DNA of 64,000 nt, from positions 62,001 through 126,000 of the IMG/VR virus record IMGVR_UViG_3300041411_000178. One strand, 5' to 3'. The notes beneath the pieces were generated by a model, which did not search any database, was not told the DNA's origin, and worked only from the letters and a program-made list of their open reading frames with translations. Positions 2,376 through 63,500 of the stretch are shown here, in pieces (positions within the stretch are counted from its first letter, which is position 1; each line of letters starts with the position of its first letter). Position numbers and translations under genes: made by a program.

Positions 2376-3935
2376 ATGCTTGAGCTTGCGATACGCCGAA
2401 CCTCCAGCAAGAAGTTCGAAGGGATTCTGATTACGTTCAACGATCAGATTATTAAGTTCAACGGCGAAGCGGCCATTAAACTGGAACGCACGATCAAGGA
2501 TCGCAGCGAAGCCACCTACAACCTGTTCGATTGCTTCAATGATTACATTGAAGGCACCATGGACCACGATCAGCAGAAGTATCTGTTCGATCTGTACAAC
2601 AAAGCTTACACCATTGTTGAGAGCGGTAAGTTCCAGGATTACAACGACGACCTGGCCCAAATCAAACCCATCACTGATGAGATCCTCGACTTCATCAACG
2701 TGCCGAAGTACTGCTCGTTCATCCATTACTCCAAGTACATGAAGATCCCCAAAGATCTGAGTGAAGCAGCGAGCAAGGGTGACTATCCAGAACAAACCAC
2801 CATCCGTGACCACGACTACGTCGAGCAGGTTAAGTTGGCGTTTGTGGCACGGACTATCTATCCAATCGTCTTCGGTCTGCAAGCACGATTCGAAGTGTTC
2901 ATGGGCAGTGGTGGTTTCAGCGATCTGGCCTGCGGTAACCTGATCAAGGATAACCCGTGGATCACACAACTGCCGGGTTGGCACAAACTGACCGGTTACG
3001 TCAAGTTCGCGTTTGACAAGCGTGGTATTCCTACCCAGCCTGACAGTGTCACCAGTGTTGAGAACTTTGTTGATAAAGTACTTTTTAACACGGTGTTCAA
3101 TCGTCTATGCTGTGCGGCTATTCCGGAAACGGAAGAAGGCAAGAACATTGCCACTGCTATTAACGCCTCGGTTAAGCAGCACGAGTCGTTGGGTGGTAAC
3201 TTCACGCAACGGGATTATCCAAGCGAGTCGGATGACGACAAGCGCTCGATGCTGGACAAGCACCAGATCAGTGAGGAAGTGCGCTCGACAGATGACACCG
3301 TATCGGCTGAGTTCTTCAGCTTTACGTTGTTTGACGAAGAAGACAATCCTCGTTACAAAGATCGCTTCAAGTACACCTGTGCGGCATTGGGTGTGCAGAA
3401 CGTTGAGCTGGTCGAGAAGATCTACGACAACCTGTCGCCACACTGGGACTTCGAGTTGGAAGATCACATCCTCAAGCTCCTGCAACTGACGTTTGCTTTT
3501 GAGGTGTCTCCATTTACCTTTGAAGCAGCCGGCTATGATCAACTGATGGCAGCGATCTGCATTGCGCAGGTACGACTGCATGAGCAAGGTTACAAGTACT
3601 TGCCGTCGGTGATTGGTGCGATCAAGGATCCGAATGGTGAACTGTCGCTACCAGATGGATTCAACCTGAGCGAAGAAGATCGTCAGTTCATGTCGTCCAT
3701 CTGTGAGATTCAAAACCGTAACAACGAAGGCCGCTCGTTTAACGAAGCAGTCGTCGCCGCCCAATCGTTCCTTGATAAGTTCGGTCGTGGCGTCTGGCAG
3801 TCCAATTTGGAATATGGGGTATTGGATACGCCAGAGACTTATGCATTGGTGGGTCAGGGCAAACTCTTTGCTCTGGAAATCAGCATTGAAGTCAAGAACG
3901 AATTCATGGCGTTGAACCGTAAAGTAAACGCCTAA
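2376..3935 (+). CDS. Non-virion RNA polymerase promoter-specificity subunit (phiKZ gp68-like)
   Basis: 519 aa. Size and position two genes upstream of the nvRNAP beta/beta' pair match phiKZ gp68. Confidence 0.7.
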   Translation: MLELAIRRTSSKKFEGILITFNDQIIKFNGEAAIKLERTIKDRSEATYNLFDCFNDYIEGTMDHDQQKYLFDLYNKAYTIVESGKFQDYNDDLAQIKPITDEILDFINVPKYCSFIHYSKYMKIPKDLSEAASKGDYPEQTTIRDHDYVEQVKLAFVARTIYPIVFGLQARFEVFMGSGGFSDLACGNLIKDNPWITQLPGWHKLTGYVKFAFDKRGIPTQPDSVTSVENFVDKVLFNTVFNRLCCAAIPETEEGKNIATAINASVKQHESLGGNFTQRDYPSESDDDKRSMLDKHQISEEVRSTDDTVSAEFFSFTLFDEEDNPRYKDRFKYTCAALGVQNVELVEKIYDNLSPHWDFELEDHILKLLQLTFAFEVSPFTFEAAGYDQLMAAICIAQVRLHEQGYKYLPSVIGAIKDPNGELSLPDGFNLSEEDRQFMSSICEIQNRNNEGRSFNEAVVAAQSFLDKFGRGVWQSNLEYGVLDTPETYALVGQGKLFALEISIEVKNEFMALNRKVNA

Positions 3936-3966: not shown

Positions 3967-5403
3967 ATGGCAGAAATTACGCTGATCAAAGCAATCTTCG
4001 GTATGGGTAACATGAACCATACCCACGTCCATCGGCACAACATCCTGGACATGTCGACGATGAACATCGACACCATCAAGATGGAGCAGCATCAAGGTGG
4101 TGTAACCCCTAACACACTGAATGCCATTGCTGCTCAGTCGGGCGGTCTGACCACGCGTCCATCCGGTGCGGTCAACATCGAAGATGACTGGAACATCCGT
4201 CGCGGTCTGGGGATGTTTACTTTCCTCATTACCAGCAACTCGGTTGAACAAGCCGAACTCGCAGTACTGGGTTACATGACCGGCGGTCAAGCCAGCCATG
4301 AAGGTATCGAACCTCAGACCATGTTCGTGCCGGTGCGTTGCTGGGATACCCGCACTACGCAGAAGTTCGACAACATGGGTCTGCCAATGGCGTCGACTGT
4401 TATTGCGTCGTCTCACCAGTTCCTGATGGGTGACCCAACCGGCCGTGACGAACTGAAGTCGGTACGTCCGCTGGACATGGCGCAAGAAGTGCTGGGCTAC
4501 ATGGCCAGTTCTGCGGATGGCATGCAAGATGGCTTTGACGGCATCCTGGCGGCTGACCTGCGTCAGAACGTAGTCATGTCCAAGACTGACAACCTCAACC
4601 CAACACACCACGCTCGTGAGCTGTTGAAGATTGCGGCAGCCACTACCACCGAAGGCCAGTACACCGGTATCGCAAATGCCATCGGTGATGCAATGGTCGG
4701 TCCTGGTATTGGTGAAGCACCTCTGACCAGCAACGAGTTCTTCAAAACCATGATGGCGGCAGGTGGTAGCTTCTCCATGAGCAACTTCATGGGCTGGAGC
4801 ATGGCGGAGATCAACTCGGTCTTCACCAACCTGCCAGACGTGATGAACATCACGCTGCTTAACCCAAGCGCCACGGTAGCTGTTGACAACACGCTGATCT
4901 CTCACGAGCACGGCGGTGCCAACAGCTTTGAAACCATCGCGGCTGAGCTGGCTTACCTGACGGTTCACATGCTGATCCGTTGCGGCCTGACTCACCTGGT
5001 GTTCTCTGCAACCAACAACCCACATCACTTCAGCGGTCTGGAAGGTTCGGACTCGGGTGTGGAAGTGGTGACTGGTACGTTCGGTTCGGTACTCGACCAC
5101 GACGAACACGCGATCAATCGGGTAGAACGCTTCAAGGAAATGCTGCGGGGCTTGTTCTTCAGCAAGTACTCGACGCAGTTCGTTCACACCTCGACGATCA
5201 TCAGCGTTCAGGTCAGCTGCCACCTGTTCGGTGAAACCGACGTGACGGTGTTCTTCAACGGGGAGGAAGGTCTCCAACGGAAGTACACCAATGCTACGTA
5301 CGCGGTTAACCGGACCAGTACCAACATCACCAACAGCCAAGACGGTCTGAATGAGGCTCAAAACTTCATGACGAACATCACCGAATACTTCACAAAGAAC
5401 TAA
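3967..5403 (+). CDS. picA: PicA/Imp1-like phage-nucleus protein import factor (phiKZ gp69 position)
   Basis: 478 aa, directly after the gp68-like gene as in the Chimalliviridae core block. Synteny-based. Confidence 0.6.
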   Translation: MAEITLIKAIFGMGNMNHTHVHRHNILDMSTMNIDTIKMEQHQGGVTPNTLNAIAAQSGGLTTRPSGAVNIEDDWNIRRGLGMFTFLITSNSVEQAELAVLGYMTGGQASHEGIEPQTMFVPVRCWDTRTTQKFDNMGLPMASTVIASSHQFLMGDPTGRDELKSVRPLDMAQEVLGYMASSADGMQDGFDGILAADLRQNVVMSKTDNLNPTHHARELLKIAAATTTEGQYTGIANAIGDAMVGPGIGEAPLTSNEFFKTMMAAGGSFSMSNFMGWSMAEINSVFTNLPDVMNITLLNPSATVAVDNTLISHEHGGANSFETIAAELAYLTVHMLIRCGLTHLVFSATNNPHHFSGLEGSDSGVEVVTGTFGSVLDHDEHAINRVERFKEMLRGLFFSKYSTQFVHTSTIISVQVSCHLFGETDVTVFFNGEEGLQRKYTNATYAVNRTSTNITNSQDGLNEAQNFMTNITEYFTKN

Positions 5404-17689: not shown

Positions 17690-18499
17690 ATGTCTACCAA
17701 ACAAGCACACAAGAAAGCAAAGCGTGCTGCGGCCTCGAAACAGAAAAGAAAGCAGGCTAACGTTGAACGCAACACTACCCAGTTCCTGATGGGTCGTCGT
17801 GAAACGGCTCGTTTCGAAAAGTCACCTGAAGGCAAGGAAGCATCCGAAGCGCGTCTGCGCTATGACATCGCTACCAAAGGTGTCGTGCAGACCGCTCTGG
17901 ACCTGAAGAAAGACATCGACGCAGTCAAGTCGGAACTGAACAACATCGAGGTGCTGAAAGGCATCAACGAAATGATCCCGATCCTGGGCAACATTCACGG
18001 CGTTCTCGAAGTCGTCACCAAACTGGTCGACATGAAGAAGACCGAGCTGACCGAAGAAGAAATGGCACTCGTTGTTCACTTCGACCGTCAGATCGTTGCG
18101 GTGGCCGAAGACGTTCACGCGATCTTCGAGTTCATCAACAAAGAACAAGAAGTGGACGAGTACATCTCCATCTTTGTTCACTACACCGACACCCTCGCCG
18201 AAATCATGCAGTTCGATATCCCGGCTCTGATGGACGGCGTACTGCGTCCGCGTGAACTGCTGATCAACGAATACGTTGCTGAGCACAAACACGAAGGCGA
18301 AAACAACTACGACTTCGGCATGCGCCTGCACGGCGAACGTATCAGCCGCGTGCAAGTCCTGTACCGCACTATCCCAGTCAGCGACGCCGCTCCTGCCGGT
18401 GTGCCTGTTGAGCCACCAGACGCTTACGAAGATGTAGCTGCTGGTGTGTTGCTCGAAAAGGATTCGTTCGAAGACGTCTCCGCCCGGCAAGTTAACTGA
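17690..18499 (+). CDS. Hypothetical helical protein with K/R-rich N-terminus
   Basis: 269 aa, N-terminus MSTKQAHKKAKRAAASKQKRK, strong codon bias. Confidence 0.75.
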   Translation: MSTKQAHKKAKRAAASKQKRKQANVERNTTQFLMGRRETARFEKSPEGKEASEARLRYDIATKGVVQTALDLKKDIDAVKSELNNIEVLKGINEMIPILGNIHGVLEVVTKLVDMKKTELTEEEMALVVHFDRQIVAVAEDVHAIFEFINKEQEVDEYISIFVHYTDTLAEIMQFDIPALMDGVLRPRELLINEYVAEHKHEGENNYDFGMRLHGERISRVQVLYRTIPVSDAAPAGVPVEPPDAYEDVAAGVLLEKDSFEDVSARQVN

Positions 18500-18522: not shown

Positions 18523-20250
18523 ATGAGTACCGAACCTCAAGATCCACTCGAGCAACAATCAGCTGCTCAGGCGCCGGTTACTGCTGCTCCAGCGGCACCG
18601 GCTCCAACGCACCACGATGTGCACACCGCTCAAAACACTACCATGACCAAAGTCCTGCCTCCTGAAGATGAAGTCCTTCGTGACCTCACTCAAGAAGAGC
18701 AGCAGGACGGTGGTTTCCTGACAGTCTTCCTGGGTAACCGTAAAGAAGACGTTGTCAAAGCTCAGAGCATTATCGGGCGCTGGCTGACCTACACCGGTTC
18801 CAAGGCCATGTTCGATGAAGAGCGGCTGCCTGAATCGGTCTTCCGTAAAGCTGAGACTGATTGGCTCGGCTATATCGAAGAGAAGTTCCCGGGCAAGACG
18901 TCTGACCAGGTAGCGACCCATGCGGCCGACCTGTACGCGTTCATGTCGGAGATCCAGGACGAGCTGAAGATTCGTACCTCGATCCTGAACGAGCCGAACA
19001 TCAGCAACACCTTCGACCGTGGTGGCGTCAATACCGGTGACATCGTCGGTAAGCGTCCGTCTGCATCGACCCAGGGTTTCTCGAACCGTGAGAACATGCG
19101 TCGTCGTGCTGCACGTAAAACCGGTTCGGGTGCTGACAAGCTGGCCTTCGATGTACTGTGCCGTGACTCGTTTGCCACGTTCTCCTTCTCGCGTACCAAC
19201 CATACCGAGATGGGCTCGCTGATGAACGACATCCGTCGTACCATCACCGGTTATGTTCAGCAGATCGGTAACAACAGTGCCGTGCTGGCACGTATCGCGT
19301 CGATCCGGGTTATCTGGAACTTCATTGCGAAGCGTATCAACAACACCAGCGTTACTGACGTGGCGGACTTCAACCAGTTGGCCAACGTGATCCTGCTGAC
19401 CGACATGGATACCATCATCACGGCGTTGATCGAATCGACCAACACCAAGGGTATCAACCTGAACCTGCGTTGCTTCTCCGGTAGCTGTGACTGGGAAGCC
19501 TTCAAGCTGGTACAGGCGTCGAAGCTGCTGCGTCAGCGGCACCACATCACCACCCCGGCCGATGAGGCGATCTACGCCAACCTGATCAACGGTCATGCCA
19601 AGTACACCATGGAAGAGACGCGTGCCATGAGCCGTGCTTCGACCTACGGTCTGGAAAGCAACCGTGTGTATAACGACGAGAAGTCGATGTACCTGGAATG
19701 CGCTCCTCCTACTCTGGCCGAAGCTTTCGCTGCGTTTGACTTCTTCATCGGCGAGATCAACCCAGAGCTGGCTGAGCTGCGTACCAAACTCGTAGACCCT
19801 GCTGAGTACCAGACTCAGGTCACGATGGTGCACAACAACCTCGGCTCGACTGAGTTCATCCACTGGGTGCAGCGTCAGGTTGACCTGCCGGCAGAGAACA
19901 CCGATGAAGTTGAAACGGTTTTTGCCCGTAGCGAGATGGACCCGAACGACTTCAACGGCGGTATCCTGGATGTTCTGCGCGACCAGGAAGACCTCAACCG
20001 TAACCTCGTCAAGTTCGTGCTCAACAAGACGCCGTACATGTCGCGTACCTTTATGGGTGTGCGTAACTACGTGTGTCCAAAGTGCCGCAAGAACATGGGT
20101 GATCTGGAAGATCCTGAAAACCTGCTGGATCGGAAGTTGGGTTACACCCCAATTGACCCAGTGATGAGTTTTTTTACCCTCACCCAGTGGTCGATACTCA
20201 AGCAGACGGCCGTCCAAAACAAAATCAGGTCCGAAGCCCTCTCGGAATAA
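18523..20250 (+). CDS. Tail/baseplate assembly chaperone-like protein (T4 gp26-like C-terminal CxxC)
   Basis: 575 aa, C-terminal YVCPKC...GYTPIDPVMSFF and an internal CFSGSC. The function is inference. Confidence 0.5.
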   Translation: MSTEPQDPLEQQSAAQAPVTAAPAAPAPTHHDVHTAQNTTMTKVLPPEDEVLRDLTQEEQQDGGFLTVFLGNRKEDVVKAQSIIGRWLTYTGSKAMFDEERLPESVFRKAETDWLGYIEEKFPGKTSDQVATHAADLYAFMSEIQDELKIRTSILNEPNISNTFDRGGVNTGDIVGKRPSASTQGFSNRENMRRRAARKTGSGADKLAFDVLCRDSFATFSFSRTNHTEMGSLMNDIRRTITGYVQQIGNNSAVLARIASIRVIWNFIAKRINNTSVTDVADFNQLANVILLTDMDTIITALIESTNTKGINLNLRCFSGSCDWEAFKLVQASKLLRQRHHITTPADEAIYANLINGHAKYTMEETRAMSRASTYGLESNRVYNDEKSMYLECAPPTLAEAFAAFDFFIGEINPELAELRTKLVDPAEYQTQVTMVHNNLGSTEFIHWVQRQVDLPAENTDEVETVFARSEMDPNDFNGGILDVLRDQEDLNRNLVKFVLNKTPYMSRTFMGVRNYVCPKCRKNMGDLEDPENLLDRKLGYTPIDPVMSFFTLTQWSILKQTAVQNKIRSEALSE

Positions 20251-20723
20251 TCCCCCGGGTCGACAATCGGATTGTCTTCAGTCCTACGTTCAATCAGGTT
20301 AACAACTCGCTTCTAGGGAAGTCCCTTAAAGATGTCACCCCAGAAGCGATGTCGTTTAACGAGTCCATGTTGCATGATTTGAACATGAACTACTACACCC
20401 CGGCTACTATGGATCCGTTCTCTTCAGTTGCTTACATCCCTGCTGAGAACGAGTTCATTCACGAGTGGTCGATCAAGTCTGTCGCTAAGAAGTACGGCTT
20501 CTACAAACTTCATGAGGTCATGTCGTTACGTGACTACATGGAAATGCCGATGTTCCTGATCGACGATTTGATTGCGGGTGTGGGTGAAGGACGTAGTCAG
20601 CGAGACAAGGCGGACAACCCTCCAGATCAGGACGGCAAAAGCAAGATGCCTAATGTGAAGGACAGTAACAAAGACTTGACAGAAATCATGCGACAACTGG
20701 GTTTGGATAAGAAAATGTTTTAA
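20187..20723 (+). CDS. Overlapping -1-frame ORF, gp51/GT-like chaperone partner, possibly made as a frameshift fusion
   Basis: The frame is open from 20157 to 20723 and overlaps the upstream gene. No SD precedes the GTG at 20187. Contains KYGFYKLHEVMSLRDYMEMP. Confidence 0.6.
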   Translation: MVDTQADGRPKQNQVRSPLGIIPRVDNRIVFSPTFNQVNNSLLGKSLKDVTPEAMSFNESMLHDLNMNYYTPATMDPFSSVAYIPAENEFIHEWSIKSVAKKYGFYKLHEVMSLRDYMEMPMFLIDDLIAGVGEGRSQRDKADNPPDQDGKSKMPNVKDSNKDLTEIMRQLGLDKKMF

Positions 20724-20736
20724 GTACTGCTAGCCT

Positions 20737-20758
20737 CTAGGGTCCCAACGGGCCCTAG
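20737..20758 (+). terminator. Hairpin after the 20187 ORF
   Basis: CTAGGGTCC/GGGCCCTAG stem. Confidence 0.5.
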
Positions 20759-20770
20759 GGGTTAAGCCGT

Positions 20771-20778
20771 ATTTTATG
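20771..20778 (+). promoter_or_regulatory. Putative late promoter ATTTTATG
   Basis: The same octamer occurs at 24552-24559 and 50274-50281, upstream of structural genes. TATG is the known phiKZ late promoter core. Confidence 0.5.
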
Positions 20779-20828
20779 CTGAAACCATATTCATGGTCGC
20801 ATACAACTCTCTACGAAAGGGCCCTTTC

Positions 20829-21508: not shown

Positions 21509-22582
21509 ATGGAATACGTAGAAGGCTCTTTCCAACCTGACGGCGACGGCTTTGGTCTCCCTGACGCACCCCACGTCGAGATCATGTTTGACTCCCTGAA
21601 CGACACTGCTGAGCAGATGGACGTTGCAGGTACCGAATCCATCTCCCTCACCGCTGCTCAACAGTACGCTCAAGGCGTTCTGATGGCCGCTGGTGTCTTT
21701 TCTGGCTCCCAGGTAACCGGTAACGAAGGTGTGTTCTCCGCTATCGGCGACGGCTTCAAGGCAGTTTGGGATTACATCTCCAAAACCTTCAAGTCGATCT
21801 GGGACTTCTTCTTCAACCGTGACAGCGCCAAAGACGCTGAAGTGGCGAAAGAAGCCTGCAAAGAAAACGCCGACGCTCTGGCTGCCGCGAATGCCGGTAC
21901 TCAGGACGAAGCCACCGCCGACAAGCAACTGAACGCAATGGCTGCTGCCGGTGTTGACGGTGAAGAAATCGCCAAGGCGAAGAAAGGCACTCTGGCCGAG
22001 AAGAAGAAAGCGGTCAAAGACGCCCTGAAAGAAATGGGCAAGATGAACAAGAAGGGTCAAGCTGCTTTGGCCACTGTTGTTGCCAATGCCGTCAAAGCCA
22101 AGAAAGCATTCCTGGCCCTCGCTACCTCCCATGGCAGCGAGAAAGAAAACAAAGCGGCCGGTCACCTGGCTGGCAAGACTGACTTCGCTGACAACGCCAT
22201 CGACATGGCCGGCATGGTTCTGAAGTTCACCAACCGTGACGCTCAGTTCCTCAGCAAGCTGGAAAAAGCCACCAGCATCACCGACGTCGGCGCTGCGATT
22301 CAATTCAGCAAAGACTGCGCGGCCAACATCGACTCCCTGAAATCGTTCTCCGACGAATTCAAGAACAAGAAAGCGGCCATCGAGAAAATGCTGACCAGCG
22401 CTGAAGCCAAGATGAAGAAGGCCAAAGACGCGAAGGACAAAGCTGAACTCCAGAAAGACATCGGCGCTCTGCGTGTGATCGTCGGTACTGGCGTGAAAGC
22501 GTCCAAGCTGATCGAAGCCAACTACACCCGCGTATCCGAAGCGTCCACTGCCCTTAACAAGGTCTTTGGTATCGCCGCTTAA
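21509..22582 (+). CDS. Internal head (ejection-type) protein
   Basis: 357 aa. Acidic propeptide with GTE and GNE sites, aromatic amphipathic helix, K/A-rich body. Confidence 0.7.
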   Translation: MEYVEGSFQPDGDGFGLPDAPHVEIMFDSLNDTAEQMDVAGTESISLTAAQQYAQGVLMAAGVFSGSQVTGNEGVFSAIGDGFKAVWDYISKTFKSIWDFFFNRDSAKDAEVAKEACKENADALAAANAGTQDEATADKQLNAMAAAGVDGEEIAKAKKGTLAEKKKAVKDALKEMGKMNKKGQAALATVVANAVKAKKAFLALATSHGSEKENKAAGHLAGKTDFADNAIDMAGMVLKFTNRDAQFLSKLEKATSITDVGAAIQFSKDCAANIDSLKSFSDEFKNKKAAIEKMLTSAEAKMKKAKDAKDKAELQKDIGALRVIVGTGVKASKLIEANYTRVSEASTALNKVFGIAA

Positions 22583-57974: not shown

Positions 57975-58021
57975 GGTCTATTACGCATTTTGTTTTTTTA
58001 AGATACAGCCGGTTTCACGTC

Positions 58022-60544: not shown

Positions 60545-63500
60545 TTACTCGTCTTTCGATCCGTTGAACGGATTGTACGCTTTGCCACCTGGATCTTTAT
60601 CACCAGCTGGTTTATCAGCGTCTTCTTCCGCTGGAGGATTGTCCGCATCATCAGCCGCAGGCGGCGAATCAGCCGGTTCATCACCAGGCATTGGAGGACC
60701 GAGATCGTCACCAGTGCCAAGATCCCCGTCACTAGTATCAAGGCTTTGATCGTCGGTACCCGTACCCGGCTCCACAGGAGCATCATCAGGTCCGCCACCA
60801 AGGCCACCATCAGTATCAAGCCCATTAGCACCTTCCTCAGGTTCTGGTTCAGGAGGCGCCAGTTTCTTCGCCAACTTCTCACCGTACTGCGAGTTGAGTT
60901 TCTTGTTGGAGTCGGTAATCCCTTCAATGAGGTCAGCAACAAAGGTTGCGGTGTTGATACGTTGGTGGATCATCTGTTGTACAAACGACGCGATACCACC
61001 ACCTTTACCTTCGTTAACAATATCATCAAACGGCATCGGCAAGTTAAACCGACGGAATGCTTCAGACGTCAATGCCGACTTAACCATCGATTTGATTTCG
61101 ACGTCAGTGAAGTCTTCAGATTGAATATTCAGCGCCTTCAAGATCTGAGGCAGCACACCGTTGTTACCCGCGGCCTCTTCCCAAGCCGATACCAGTGCTG
61201 TTACAGCGTCCAAGCTATCCTTCAGCTTGTTAGTCGACTCAGTGCTGGTAGGTACTGGTAGGTAGACGTAGATCGAGGTAAAGAAGTCCGCCAAGATAAC
61301 CTTGACCTTTTCCTCGTCAGTGCCTTCCAGTAATTCCTTGCTATCAGGCTTCCAGAGTTTCTTGTTGTCCAGAATACACTGAACAAGGTCTTGCATCAGA
61401 GGACCGTTGACTCGGGTATGCTTGCGCATGAAGTCAATCAAGAAGTCGCAGATCATTTCCTGCCAGTTGATCGCCTGGTTAAACACCATCTCGTATTCAG
61501 TCACCGCTTCAATCTTGAAGTTGTTCTGATCGTCCGCCACATCCAGCCATGCACGAGGCAGGTTGAAGTAGTTGGAAATGGAGTTCATTACAGCATCCCG
61601 GCTGGCCGGATCAACGGGCTTGAAGTTATCCTTCTGTTTACCCTGGGTACTGATGTCCGGTGTAGGCAAGTGAACGTTGTCACCGGCGTTAACCTTAACC
61701 GACAGAGACGCTTCTCGCAGCGCATCCACAACCTGGGGTACGGATAGTTGAGCCGTCGACAGGATGGAGTGCAACTTAGGGTTGGTGTCGAAGAAGGTAG
61801 CCCGCGCAATTGCAATGGTTTGTTCTGGGTCAGAGTCCTCCTTCTCGATGTTAATAACCATCTCGGTGTGAGGCTGAGCTGCTTCCAGGTTGGCCAAGGC
61901 GTCAGCGACGTCGTAGGCTGCCAGACGAGCGATGTGAGTTTTAGCCGCTTGAGTCAGAGACTGACCAATGCCCAGACGGTTGTACTTGATAGCGCCGTAC
62001 GAAACAGCTTCGCCCGGTACGTACAAGCAACGCACACCTTGTTTACGGAAGATACGGGATAGGAAGATCTTGTTGACCTCTTCATCCAGCGTGATACTGA
62101 CGCTGTTACCCTTGTCGCTATAAACAGAAGAGATGAACTGACGAACAATGCTCTTCTCAGCCATGTCCGCGAACTCAGACATATCGAAGTCACAAGGGTT
62201 ACCCGACTGCACAGCCCGCAAGGAAGAGATCAGCGAGTTCTCGCTACCCATCTTGTTCTTGTTGGCGATGCTGTCCTTGTTCTTCTTCAGGGACTGGTAG
62301 AACTCTGGGTCATCAGTGTTCTTGAGGAACGCACCGGTCTCTGGGTCCAGCAGAATGATGTAGTCATCGATCTTGCCGTTACTGCCGTTGAAGTGAATCG
62401 GGAAGATCGCTTCGGAAGGGATGTGCCAGCTCAGACCACGACCGTAAGGCGCCACGCTCAGCGAGTCATTCGACTTGATGAACTGCAACGACTGAGAACG
62501 AATGTTGCGCGACTTGAATACCGAAGCATTCAGGTTGTTCAACTGTTCCTCATTCAGGTTCATGGTGGTGGCTTGTTCAGGCTTGTCCTTGCCAGCCTTA
62601 GCTGCCTTCTTAGGTTTTCCGTCCTTACCCGCGTTCTTCTCATCTTCTTCCTGCTGCTTAGCCAGGTCGGCGTCCCGTTCCTTCTGGGACTTCATAGCCG
62701 AGGAGATGATGTTGTCAAAGCTTTCTGCACCCATCACCGACTTGATGTCACGATCGCGCTTAGCCTCCTGGAACTTCTGGAGGTACAGTACGGCCGGGTT
62801 GTCGGTGATGGTGATCCCCCATTCGTTCTCGGTGTCTACTGCTGGGTCAAAGATAGGGAACTCTTCTTCGACGAAATCAGACCCGGTGGTGAACAATGCT
62901 TCCAAACCACTGACCGCACCGGCATTAGGTGTTTTCGGAGCATGAGGGTTACGAACAAAGCGACCCTTGTTCTTGACCTTGGTCTTACCATCAGCGAAAA
63001 CGAACTCGGCATCCAGCTCGCTTTTGGCCTTGTTGAACTCTTCGTTACCAGTCCGTTTGGATGGGTCAACTTCGGAGCCGTTGATCAAGTAATCCAGGCC
63101 AGGACGACTCAGGTTAAAGATCGCGTAGGAGCCCGTATTCCACATGATATCGTCGAGCATCTTCTTCAGAAGCGACTCGATCTTATAGTCATTGGTGTAA
63201 TAATCGTCCCAGATGGCCAGCAGGCTGGTGTGCAGAGCCGCGTTTTTAATTTTTGTGCTCTGGGTATCGTAGGTCAACATTTTGTCCTGTTTCCCGTTAG
63301 GGTACAGGATGATCGTGTTCCAGATCAAGTTGGCCTTATCAATCATCGGTGTAATGGCCCGCAGGTCATATGCCGAGTTGATGTTATTACTGATAATGTT
63401 GCTCAAGCGATTAAGCTTATATTCGTTGATGGTTTTTGTACCACCAACCTCCTCACGATCAGGAGCGACCCCATTTTTAGGCGTTGCATTACGCAAGGTA

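Follow-up and report, generated by a model that had tools for sequence, protein, structure and literature searches.

The window examined, a 64,000-nucleotide stretch of DNA (positions 62,001 to 126,000 of IMG/VR record IMGVR_UViG_3300041411_000178), was found to carry a gene of 575 codons at 18523-20250 on the plus strand. Its product is a member of phrog_4585 (full-length profile match, E 7e-96), the family of phiKZ gp077 and Chimalliviridae core gene cg18, to which it was linked by HMM searches reaching the phiKZ-type relatives and by conserved synteny. Across 123 representatives of the family the four cysteines C317, C322, C518 and C521 are conserved, F550 is invariant and F551 near-invariant, and an AF2 model of the 575-aa protein was obtained with pLDDT 84.7 and pTM 0.84. 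Upstream, at 17690-18499 (+), lies a co-oriented gene of 269 aa (phrog_28183), which occupies the position of phiKZ gp078 with conserved synteny and is probably in the same operon. The wider neighbourhood comprises an RNA polymerase beta subunit, a gp79-like gene, the gp78-like gene, two unknown genes and DNA polymerase, and in relatives the gene likewise lies among genes for vRNAP and nvRNAP subunits, helicase and DNA polymerase. A megablast search of the locus against phage records gave no match, because this phage is known only from metagenomes, and Pfam and NCBIfam searches with both products and with the neighbours returned nothing useful.

Codons 549-552 of the gene are AGT TTT TTT ACC, so that the heptamer T TTT TTT occupies 20169-20175 (+) in X XXY YYZ phase, from the third base of codon 549 to codon 551. 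The -1 frame is closed by TGA at 20154-20156 and then stays open from 20157 to the TAA at 20721-20723, giving 188 codons stop to stop, or 184 from the slip site. A -1 slip would therefore join 551 residues of the upstream gene to 182 residues of the -1 frame in a 733-aa fusion with the junction ...PVMSFF|YPHPVVDTQADGRPK. Within this frame a GTG at 20187 and an ATG at 20349 are the candidate starts of the downstream ORF, but both show weak anti-SD pairing (-2.2 and -0.9 kcal/mol, respectively, against -5 to -9 for neighbouring real starts). The gene as a whole prefers TTC over TTT for Phe (21 against 6). Every coordinate stated in the sequence-only reading was confirmed, including those of the heptamer and the open -1 frame, and the codon bias that it noted is real.

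A run of seven T is not by itself beyond chance. The window contains three loci with runs of seven or more T (five overlapping matches), below the 9.3 matches expected from shuffled sequence, and the other two runs lie outside long ORFs. What is far beyond chance is the conservation of the site. Nor is the run a sequencing error, because three DNA assemblies from different studies, one of which may be the window's own source, carry the stretch 19700-20800 with no difference and no indel.

To examine conservation, homologous gene pairs were compared, a test that had been proposed from the sequence alone. The site in phase and the -1 ORF were present in the window and in 9 annotated relatives sharing 22-38% identity, and in 52 of 52 loci once IMG/VR was added. 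The canonical site was also found in 5 of 6 distant metagenomic relatives, in SL2, phiKZ, SPFM17, PCH45 and RSL2, and in 5 of 7 further genera. In total, the downstream ORF lies in the -1 frame and overlaps the same spot in 70 of 70 homologous loci, which include phiKZ (PHIKZ077 + PHIKZ076.4), EL, OBP, RisingSun, PCH45, RSL2, SPN3US-like phages and metagenomic jumbo phages. Of these 70, 67 carry an in-phase T TTT TTY/A, whereas the three exceptions keep a degenerate U_UUY site (N UUU UUC or G GUU UUU A) with the -1 ORF intact. The heptamer is held at synonymous positions by purifying selection: codon 549 always ends in T although the residue varies (S/N/A/T), and F550 is TTT in 34 of 34 sequences, against 26% TTT gene-wide. 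The permitted shift window is narrow, running from 4 codons upstream to 11 codons downstream of the run, and contains no other conserved slippery motif.

The peptide encoded in the -1 frame is conserved from the slip site onwards, with the motif FF[YRH]PxP...R.SPL, and tblastn of the -1 translation matched relatives from residue 4, which is the slip site. In the dual-coding overlap at 20176-20250 (+), frame 0 encodes the C-terminal helix of the short form (TLTQ...EALSE; predicted at residues 546-574 in the AF2 model), and frame -1 encodes the linker YPHPV...RSPLG. Synonymous-site identity peaks here at 0.72 against about 0.49 elsewhere in the gene, and substitutions are spread evenly over codon positions, with a position-3 share of 0.34. 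The 98 nt that follow, 20251-20348 (+), between the frame-0 stop and the first ATG, are coding only in the -1 frame, which is open in all loci. Their position-3 share of substitutions is 0.52, the same as the 0.51 of the annotated downstream gene, showing that this gap evolves as coding sequence. The remaining part, 20349-20723 (+), is what gene callers annotate as a separate gene of about 124 aa (phrog_19747, matched from residue 58 of the GTG ORF). It is a small domain, predicted to be helical (AF2 pLDDT 69), followed by a charged tail, and gave BFVD matches to the small proteins of RisingSun, PS1 and Goslar. Annotated starts of the downstream ORF fall at different alignment positions. In phiKZ no ATG, GTG or TTG exists for 87 codons after the site, a point already inside the conserved domain; SL2 likewise has no start codon for 87 codons, and the annotation of these two phages covers only a fragment of 45-80 aa.

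Motifs of the H_HH.U_UU.Y type are among the most efficient -1 motifs in E. coli, and U_UU.U_UU.Y is a high-efficiency bacterial motif that works above background without stimulators (PMC4066793). Stimulatory elements, which are common but not obligatory, were not detected at this site: the minimum free energy of the downstream region was unremarkable (z = 0.63), RNAalifold gave 0 consensus pairs, and no conserved SD-like sequence was seen upstream. The efficiency of any shift may therefore be low.

The best explanation is that ribosomes translating the 575-codon gene reach U UUU UUU and, in a minority of passes, both Phe-tRNAs slip back one base. In this view, most ribosomes would stay in frame, add a 24-residue C-terminal helix and stop at 20250, giving the short form of 575 aa. 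Slipped ribosomes would read YPHPV... through the gap, which only they could reach, and on to 20723, giving a long form of 733 aa with the same first 551 residues, a proline-rich disordered linker, a helical domain of about 130 aa and a charged tail. The predicted junction is LGYTPIDPVMSFF-YPHPVVDTQADGRPK for this phage and FPHLIPIDMLSTFF-YFGGLEVKPDGVVNDLR for phiKZ, in which the short form would be 533 aa and the long form about 687 aa. The downstream gene would then be the alternative C-terminus of this protein (the pair being gp077 + gp076.4 in phiKZ) and not an independent gene, with the recoding signal shared by the whole phiKZ-related jumbo-phage group. The anatomy of the site, its conservation and the coding constraint in the -1 frame are established by the comparisons above, whereas it is inferred that the long protein is made, that the shift is ribosomal, that it is a minority event and that the two forms act in a fixed ratio. 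We are fairly confident in a ribosomal -1 frameshift producing a functional long isoform, a confidence that does not extend to any particular function. The interpretation offered by the sequence-only reading was partly supported: the programmed -1 frameshift, its site and junction, the fusion of about 733 aa, the lack of a usable downstream start and the phiKZ-like origin are all supported, more strongly than could be known from one sequence, but its G/GT-type tail chaperone label holds only as an analogy of expression architecture, and its suggested resemblance to T4 gp26/gp51 is only weakly supported.

The same fusion could arise by transcriptional slippage, if the phage RNA polymerase stuttered on the T run and added one U to a fraction of mRNAs. 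Runs of 7-8 T occur at the site in most lineages, UUUUUUU is noted as prone to transcriptional slippage (PMC4066793), these phages use unusual multisubunit RNA polymerases, and no stimulatory RNA structure was found. However, a large clade keeps only T6 (T TTT TTC) and three lineages keep only T5, runs that are short for polymerase stuttering but still fit A-site U_UUY tRNA re-pairing. In addition, the run is never lengthened beyond 8, and the base after it is restricted exactly as the ribosomal model predicts (Y, rarely A). A cDNA contig among the metagenomic RNA-library assemblies shows no indel, although contigs cannot reveal minor variants. Transcriptional slippage is considered unlikely.

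Two independent genes, as annotated in all public records, are strongly disfavoured. An ATG does exist at 20349, and phrog_19747 models only the C-terminal part of about 120 aa, but this reading leaves the T run and overlap as incidental despite their retention, and does not account for the inconsistent annotated starts, the lack of a start codon in phiKZ and SL2, the weak SD pairing or the protein-level conservation upstream of the ATG. An artefact or pseudogene, in which a homopolymer miscall or recent mutation has split one long gene, would be typical of homopolymers but is refuted by the occurrence of the same arrangement in 70 genomes from many laboratories and sequencing platforms, by the identical assemblies, and by the frame-0 tail after the site, which is itself conserved and modelled as a confident helix.

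With regard to function, the protein is not a lambda G/GT homologue. There was no Pfam TAC hit in 34 close and 81 distant homologues, the only BFVD matches to proteins named tail assembly chaperone had E above 1 and probability at most 0.18, and a TAC_4 row in the ESM Atlas is only a lead. Profile searches for PF12322, the Pfam family of the T4 gp26 and gp51 baseplate hub assembly chaperones (PMC3004832), matched 0 of 34 close and 0 of 81 distant homologues, although T4 gp26 and gp51 themselves scored 1e-64 and 1e-52. Searches of the PDB by sequence profile and by Foldseek found nothing. Foldseek against BFVD gave hits to T4-like 'baseplate hub assembly protein/chaperone' entries with E 6e-3 to 0.3, probability 0.77-1.0 and TM 0.43-0.56, and ESM Atlas features scored 0.89. 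With hhalign, single T4 gp26 and gp51 sequences aligned only at the CPxC motif (probability 11-18%), the full family gave 9.9%, and one comparison gave 58% (E 1e-4), collinear to the gp26 C-terminus; none of these results reaches significance. The layout of two Cys pairs, the second being CPxC near the C-terminus, followed by a conserved FF is shared with T4 gp26 (C82, C84, C187, C190, F204, F205).

It is thus only tentatively suggested that the protein is a non-virion assembly chaperone distantly related to gp26/gp51, with the long form adding a second binding module in the manner of lambda G/GT. It is about equally possible that it is an early or middle zinc-binding factor acting in replication, transcription or phage-nucleus biology, the two isoforms tuning that role, which is compatible with the frameshift. 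In favour of this are the neighbouring RNA polymerase, helicase and DNA polymerase genes, and a published early-infection proteome in which the Churi homologue of phiKZ gp077 is listed among early-expressed proteins (PMC11849849), which sits awkwardly with a purely late tail chaperone. As far as could be judged, the protein is also not among the 28 modelled in the Goslar virion, in a paper that mentions no chaperone or frameshift, but absence from virions is also what an assembly chaperone would show. Against it, fold and motif leads point to gp26/gp51 and to nothing in nucleic acid metabolism, and the family extends to SPN3US-like and other jumbo phages whose taxonomy lines differ from that of phiKZ, so it may not be tied to the phage nucleus.

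Core gene cg18 is listed as a hypothetical protein by Prichard et al. (2023), who do not mention a frameshift; the next core gene there is cg19 (phiKZ gp079), so the downstream ORF does not seem to be listed beside it. Literature searches for a frameshift in phiKZ, Chimalliviridae, SPN3US, 201phi2-1 or gp077 returned only unrelated uses of the word, in agreement with the statement in the sequence-only reading that none was known for phiKZ-like phages. If correct, the frameshift would add a protein of about 730 aa to the proteomes of phiKZ and of hundreds of therapeutic and model jumbo phages, and would correct a systematic annotation error, with PHIKZ076.4, SL2_276 and similar entries being fragments of a trans-frame C-terminus. 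Essentiality, CRISPRi/ASO and Tn-seq data for the 'intergenic' stretch and the small ORF should then be read as belonging to gp077. It would also give the first functional handle on cg18 and offer a compact U UUU UUY signal without a detected stimulator across Pseudomonas, Erwinia, Vibrio, Aeromonas, Klebsiella, Ralstonia and other hosts, a useful natural test case for bacterial -1 frameshifting. A more far-reaching and rather unlikely possibility is that the frameshift is an ancient, obligatory feature of the whole phiKZ-related group and the long isoform an essential core protein missed entirely by current annotations. Were the gp26/gp51 link real, jumbo phages would run a G/GT-style two-isoform logic on a hub-chaperone scaffold, tying the unexplained T4 gp26/gp51 (and gp26') system to the conserved tail-chaperone frameshift; alternatively, the isoform pair might act early, in a nucleus- or replication-linked step, which would be a new use of recoding in phages.

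Comparison with known systems shows partial similarity in each case. Lambda gpG/gpGT and the tail assembly chaperone frameshift reported to be conserved in long-tailed phages (Xu, Hendrix & Duda 2004) share the -1 slip at an X XXY YYZ heptamer close to the 3' end of the upstream ORF, a downstream ORF without a start or SD of its own, two products (here inferred) with a common N-terminus and different C-termini, and a signal conserved although the sequences diverge. However, the shared part here is 551 aa rather than about 140 aa, the heptamer is U UUU UUY rather than G GGA AAG, and the gene is not adjacent to a tape-measure gene. T4 gene 26 also gives two nested products, gp26 and gp26', but by internal initiation; its FF is encoded by TTC TTT with no slippery site, and the jumbo-phage protein is 2.5 times larger. 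The E. coli dnaX tau/gamma and IS3-family orfA-orfB frameshifts are also bacterial -1 shifts on a homopolymeric heptamer yielding two isoforms in a set ratio, but those sites use A AAA AAG with an SD-like element and a hairpin or pseudoknot as stimulators, and the dnaX shift truncates the protein, whereas the shift inferred here extends it.

The sequence examined belongs to IMG/VR contig IMGVR_UViG_3300041411_000178, a 224-kb uncultured jumbo phage, and the contigs come from rhizosphere and soil metagenomes. The open reading frame at 18523-20250 (575 aa) reads AGT TTT TTT ACC at codons 549-552, which places T TTT TTT at 20169-20175 in X XXY YYZ phase. The -1 frame is closed by TGA at 20154-56 and is then open to 20723, so that a -1 slip would give a product of 551 + 182 = 733 aa with the junction proposed in the sequence-only reading; the arrangement described in that reading was found to be correct. 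The candidate starts for the downstream frame, GTG at 20187 and ATG at 20349, pair poorly with the anti-SD sequence (-2.2 and -0.9 kcal/mol, against -5 to -9 kcal/mol for neighbouring genes). Runs of 7 or more T are rare in the window, with 3 loci (5 overlapping matches) found where 9.3 matches would be expected by chance, and only the run at 20169-20175 lies inside a long ORF. The other two, a T9 at 2287-2295 and a T7 at 57993-57999, lie outside long plus-strand ORFs at the 5' edge of long minus-strand reading frames and are probably intergenic or promoter-proximal. Three DNA assemblies from different studies, one of which may be the source of the window itself, are identical across 19700-20800. 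In a wastewater RNA-seq metagenome (run X16), two contigs of a relative with roughly 95% identity end and begin at 20147/20149, about 20 nt upstream of the T run, with the downstream contig having 2.6 times the word depth; contigs cannot distinguish an assembly break from a transcript boundary here. A T7 run on its own is not beyond chance, and the case for recoding rests on comparison with relatives.

A tblastn search was carried out with the -1 frame translation as the query. Distant phages were matched from query residue 4, which is exactly the T run, and these matches overlap the 3' end of the upstream homologue. Ten loci sharing only 22-38% protein identity were then compared, namely the window, RisingSun, EL, FishSpeaker, Miami, OBP, Aeromonas D3, PDCC-1, AerS_266, and Yubaba. 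In all ten, the heptamer T TTT TTT or T TTT TTC is in phase 21-24 codons before the stop, the downstream gene is in the -1 frame, and the -1 frame is open across the site. Addition of IMG/VR loci gave 52 of 52. An HMM search of 1.84 billion representative proteins found 1052 relatives, most of which are proteins of about 500 aa that match the C-terminal two thirds of the profile and end in CPxC...IPxD...FFxL. Of six such metagenomic loci examined, five have T TTT TTT or T TTT TTA in phase and one has G GTT TTT A, with the -1 ORF present in all six. A tblastn search with one of these proteins hit 279 phage records, covering Phikzvirus, Seoulvirus (SPN3US-like), Agricanvirus, RSL2-like phages, PCH45, and others. 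The site was verified in SL2, phiKZ, SPFM17, PCH45, and RSL2, as well as in LucasX, Special G, KpLz-2_45, JM-2012, and Yong XC31, whereas Noxifer (G TTT TTC) and PS119XW (A TTT TTC) keep only the A-site U_UUC part. In PS119XW (position 2787 of locus record L068), phiKZ (position 4524 of locus record L064), and SL2 (position 3799 of locus record L060), a second in-phase X XXY YYZ heptamer (T TTC CCA/G) lies 23 codons before the stop. The -1 frame is open from this heptamer to the end of the downstream ORF in PS119XW but closes after 7 codons in phiKZ and SL2. It may be an alternative slip site in PS119XW, which has only A TTT TTC at the usual position. Of the 70 loci examined in total, some of which are the same genome held in two collections, 67 are canonical and 3 degenerate, and all 70 have the -1 overlap.

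Selection acts both on the signal and on the -1 frame. Codon 549 always ends in T although it encodes S, N, A, or T, and F550 is TTT in 34 of 34 sequences, whereas Phe is encoded by TTT only 26% of the time in these genes. Synonymous-site identity peaks just after the site, at 0.72 against about 0.49 elsewhere. The -1 peptide is conserved from the slip site onward, with FF[YRH]PxP followed by R-x-S-P-L and then a domain with an invariant His. Among close relatives, the 98 nt between the frame-0 stop and the first ATG take 52% of their substitutions at codon position 3 of the -1 frame, compared with 51% in the annotated downstream gene and 34% in the dual-coding overlap. The annotated starts of the small gene fall at different alignment positions. 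In phiKZ, the first ATG, GTG, or TTG of the -1 ORF is found 87 codons after the site, inside the conserved domain. The -1 ORF is annotated only as a short fragment in phiKZ (L064 4560-5063; NC_004629 about 71442-71945, minus strand), where GenBank lists PHIKZ076.4 (80 aa), and in SL2 (L060 3835-4338), where SL2_276 has 45 aa. The 220-320 nt before the fragment carry no gene, an annotation gap that probably affects all Phikzvirus records. The stretch in which a shift must occur runs from 4 codons upstream to 11 codons downstream of the run and contains no other conserved slippery motif.

With regard to mechanism, U_UU.U_UU.Y belongs to the class of most efficient -1 heptamers in E. coli (H_HH.U_UU.Y) and shifts above background without stimulators, with U_UUC and U_UUU being the next-best tetramers after A_AAG (PMC4066793). 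This matches both the canonical and the degenerate sites seen here. No conserved downstream structure and no upstream SD-like element were found, so that efficiency is probably modest. Transcriptional slippage on the T run would give the same protein and cannot be excluded, although the lineages with only T6 or T5 and the restriction of the following base to Y (rarely A) favour the ribosomal model. The anatomy of the site, its deep conservation, and the coding constraint on the -1 frame are thus read directly from the sequences, whereas the long isoform itself and the ribosomal origin of the shift are inferred from them. We consider it very likely that a trans-frame long isoform is made and, given that, likely that the shift is ribosomal.

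The gene is a member of phrog_4585 (E 7e-96), and its orthologue is phiKZ gp077, which is Chimalliviridae core gene cg18, listed as "hypothetical protein." The same protein is named differently by annotators (locus record L001, 771-2585, and database hits H21 and H121), as "putative ZipA-like cell division protein" (RisingSun, LAh10, ZPAH34), "putative baseplate protein" (KPN8), and "putative baseplate hub assembly protein" (pEa_SNUABM_43); the ZipA label probably reflects only the Pro/Ala/Gln-rich N terminus. AlphaFold2 gives a confident model (pLDDT 84.7, pTM 0.84), in which the frame-0 tail (residues 546-574) is predicted to be one long helix. The -1 extension is predicted to start with about 24 disordered residues followed by a small helical domain (pLDDT 69). 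No match was found in the PDB by sequence or by fold. Searches of BFVD gave strong matches to other jumbo-phage proteins, followed by a series of T4-like "baseplate hub assembly protein/chaperone" entries with E values of 6e-3 to 0.3, probabilities of 0.77-1.0, and TM scores of 0.43-0.56, and the ESM Atlas gave PF12322 as a lead. T4 gp26 and gp51 (locus record L053, 10803-12229) both match PF12322, so they are paralogues, and both carry a CPxC motif; they are listed as hub assembly chaperones (PMC3004832). gp26 has C82xC84...C187PEC190 and ends in ...EFFELL, three residues after a conserved FF, the position at which the jumbo-phage proteins are inferred to frameshift. The jumbo family has invariant C317, C322, C518, C521, and F550 and near-invariant F551. 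Comparison by hhalign gave a collinear match to the gp26 C terminus at 58% probability with the phiKZ-type subgroup, but only 9.9% with the whole family, and no homologue hits PF12322 directly. The relationship to gp26/gp51 is therefore suggestive and has not been shown.

The expression architecture is that of lambda G/GT, but membership of that family fails on homology, size, and gene context, and T4 gene 26 makes two products by internal initiation and has no slippery site. Three points argue against a purely late tail role. The neighbours are RNAP, helicase, and DNA-polymerase genes; the Churi homologue of gp077 is listed among early-expressed proteins; and the protein has no virion note in the phiKZ record, unlike gp079 and gp080, although this last point also fits a chaperone. 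A role as a hub or tail assembly chaperone remains tentative. The interpretation in the sequence-only reading, a -1 frameshift producing a G/GT-type tail chaperone pair, is supported for the frameshift and for its architecture, whereas the chaperone label holds only as an analogy and the suggested resemblance to T4 gp26/gp51 is only weakly supported. Programmed -1 frameshifting is itself an established kind of recoding; what appears to be new is its occurrence in this core jumbo-phage gene. No description of this frameshift was found in the literature searched, which was limited to open-access papers so that an earlier mention in a subscription journal cannot be excluded, and the word does not occur in two Chimalliviridae papers checked for it, the Goslar virion structure paper and a 2025 review.

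Elsewhere in the window, the ORF at 21509-22582 encodes a 357-aa Ala/Lys-rich, probably coiled-coil protein (phrog_21850) with a weak, sub-threshold NCBIfam match to RqcH. The gp78-like protein of the window (17690-18499) has no Pfam hit, whereas in one distant metagenomic relative (locus record L054, 3507-4001) the gene in the gp078 position carries Pfam DUF1353.
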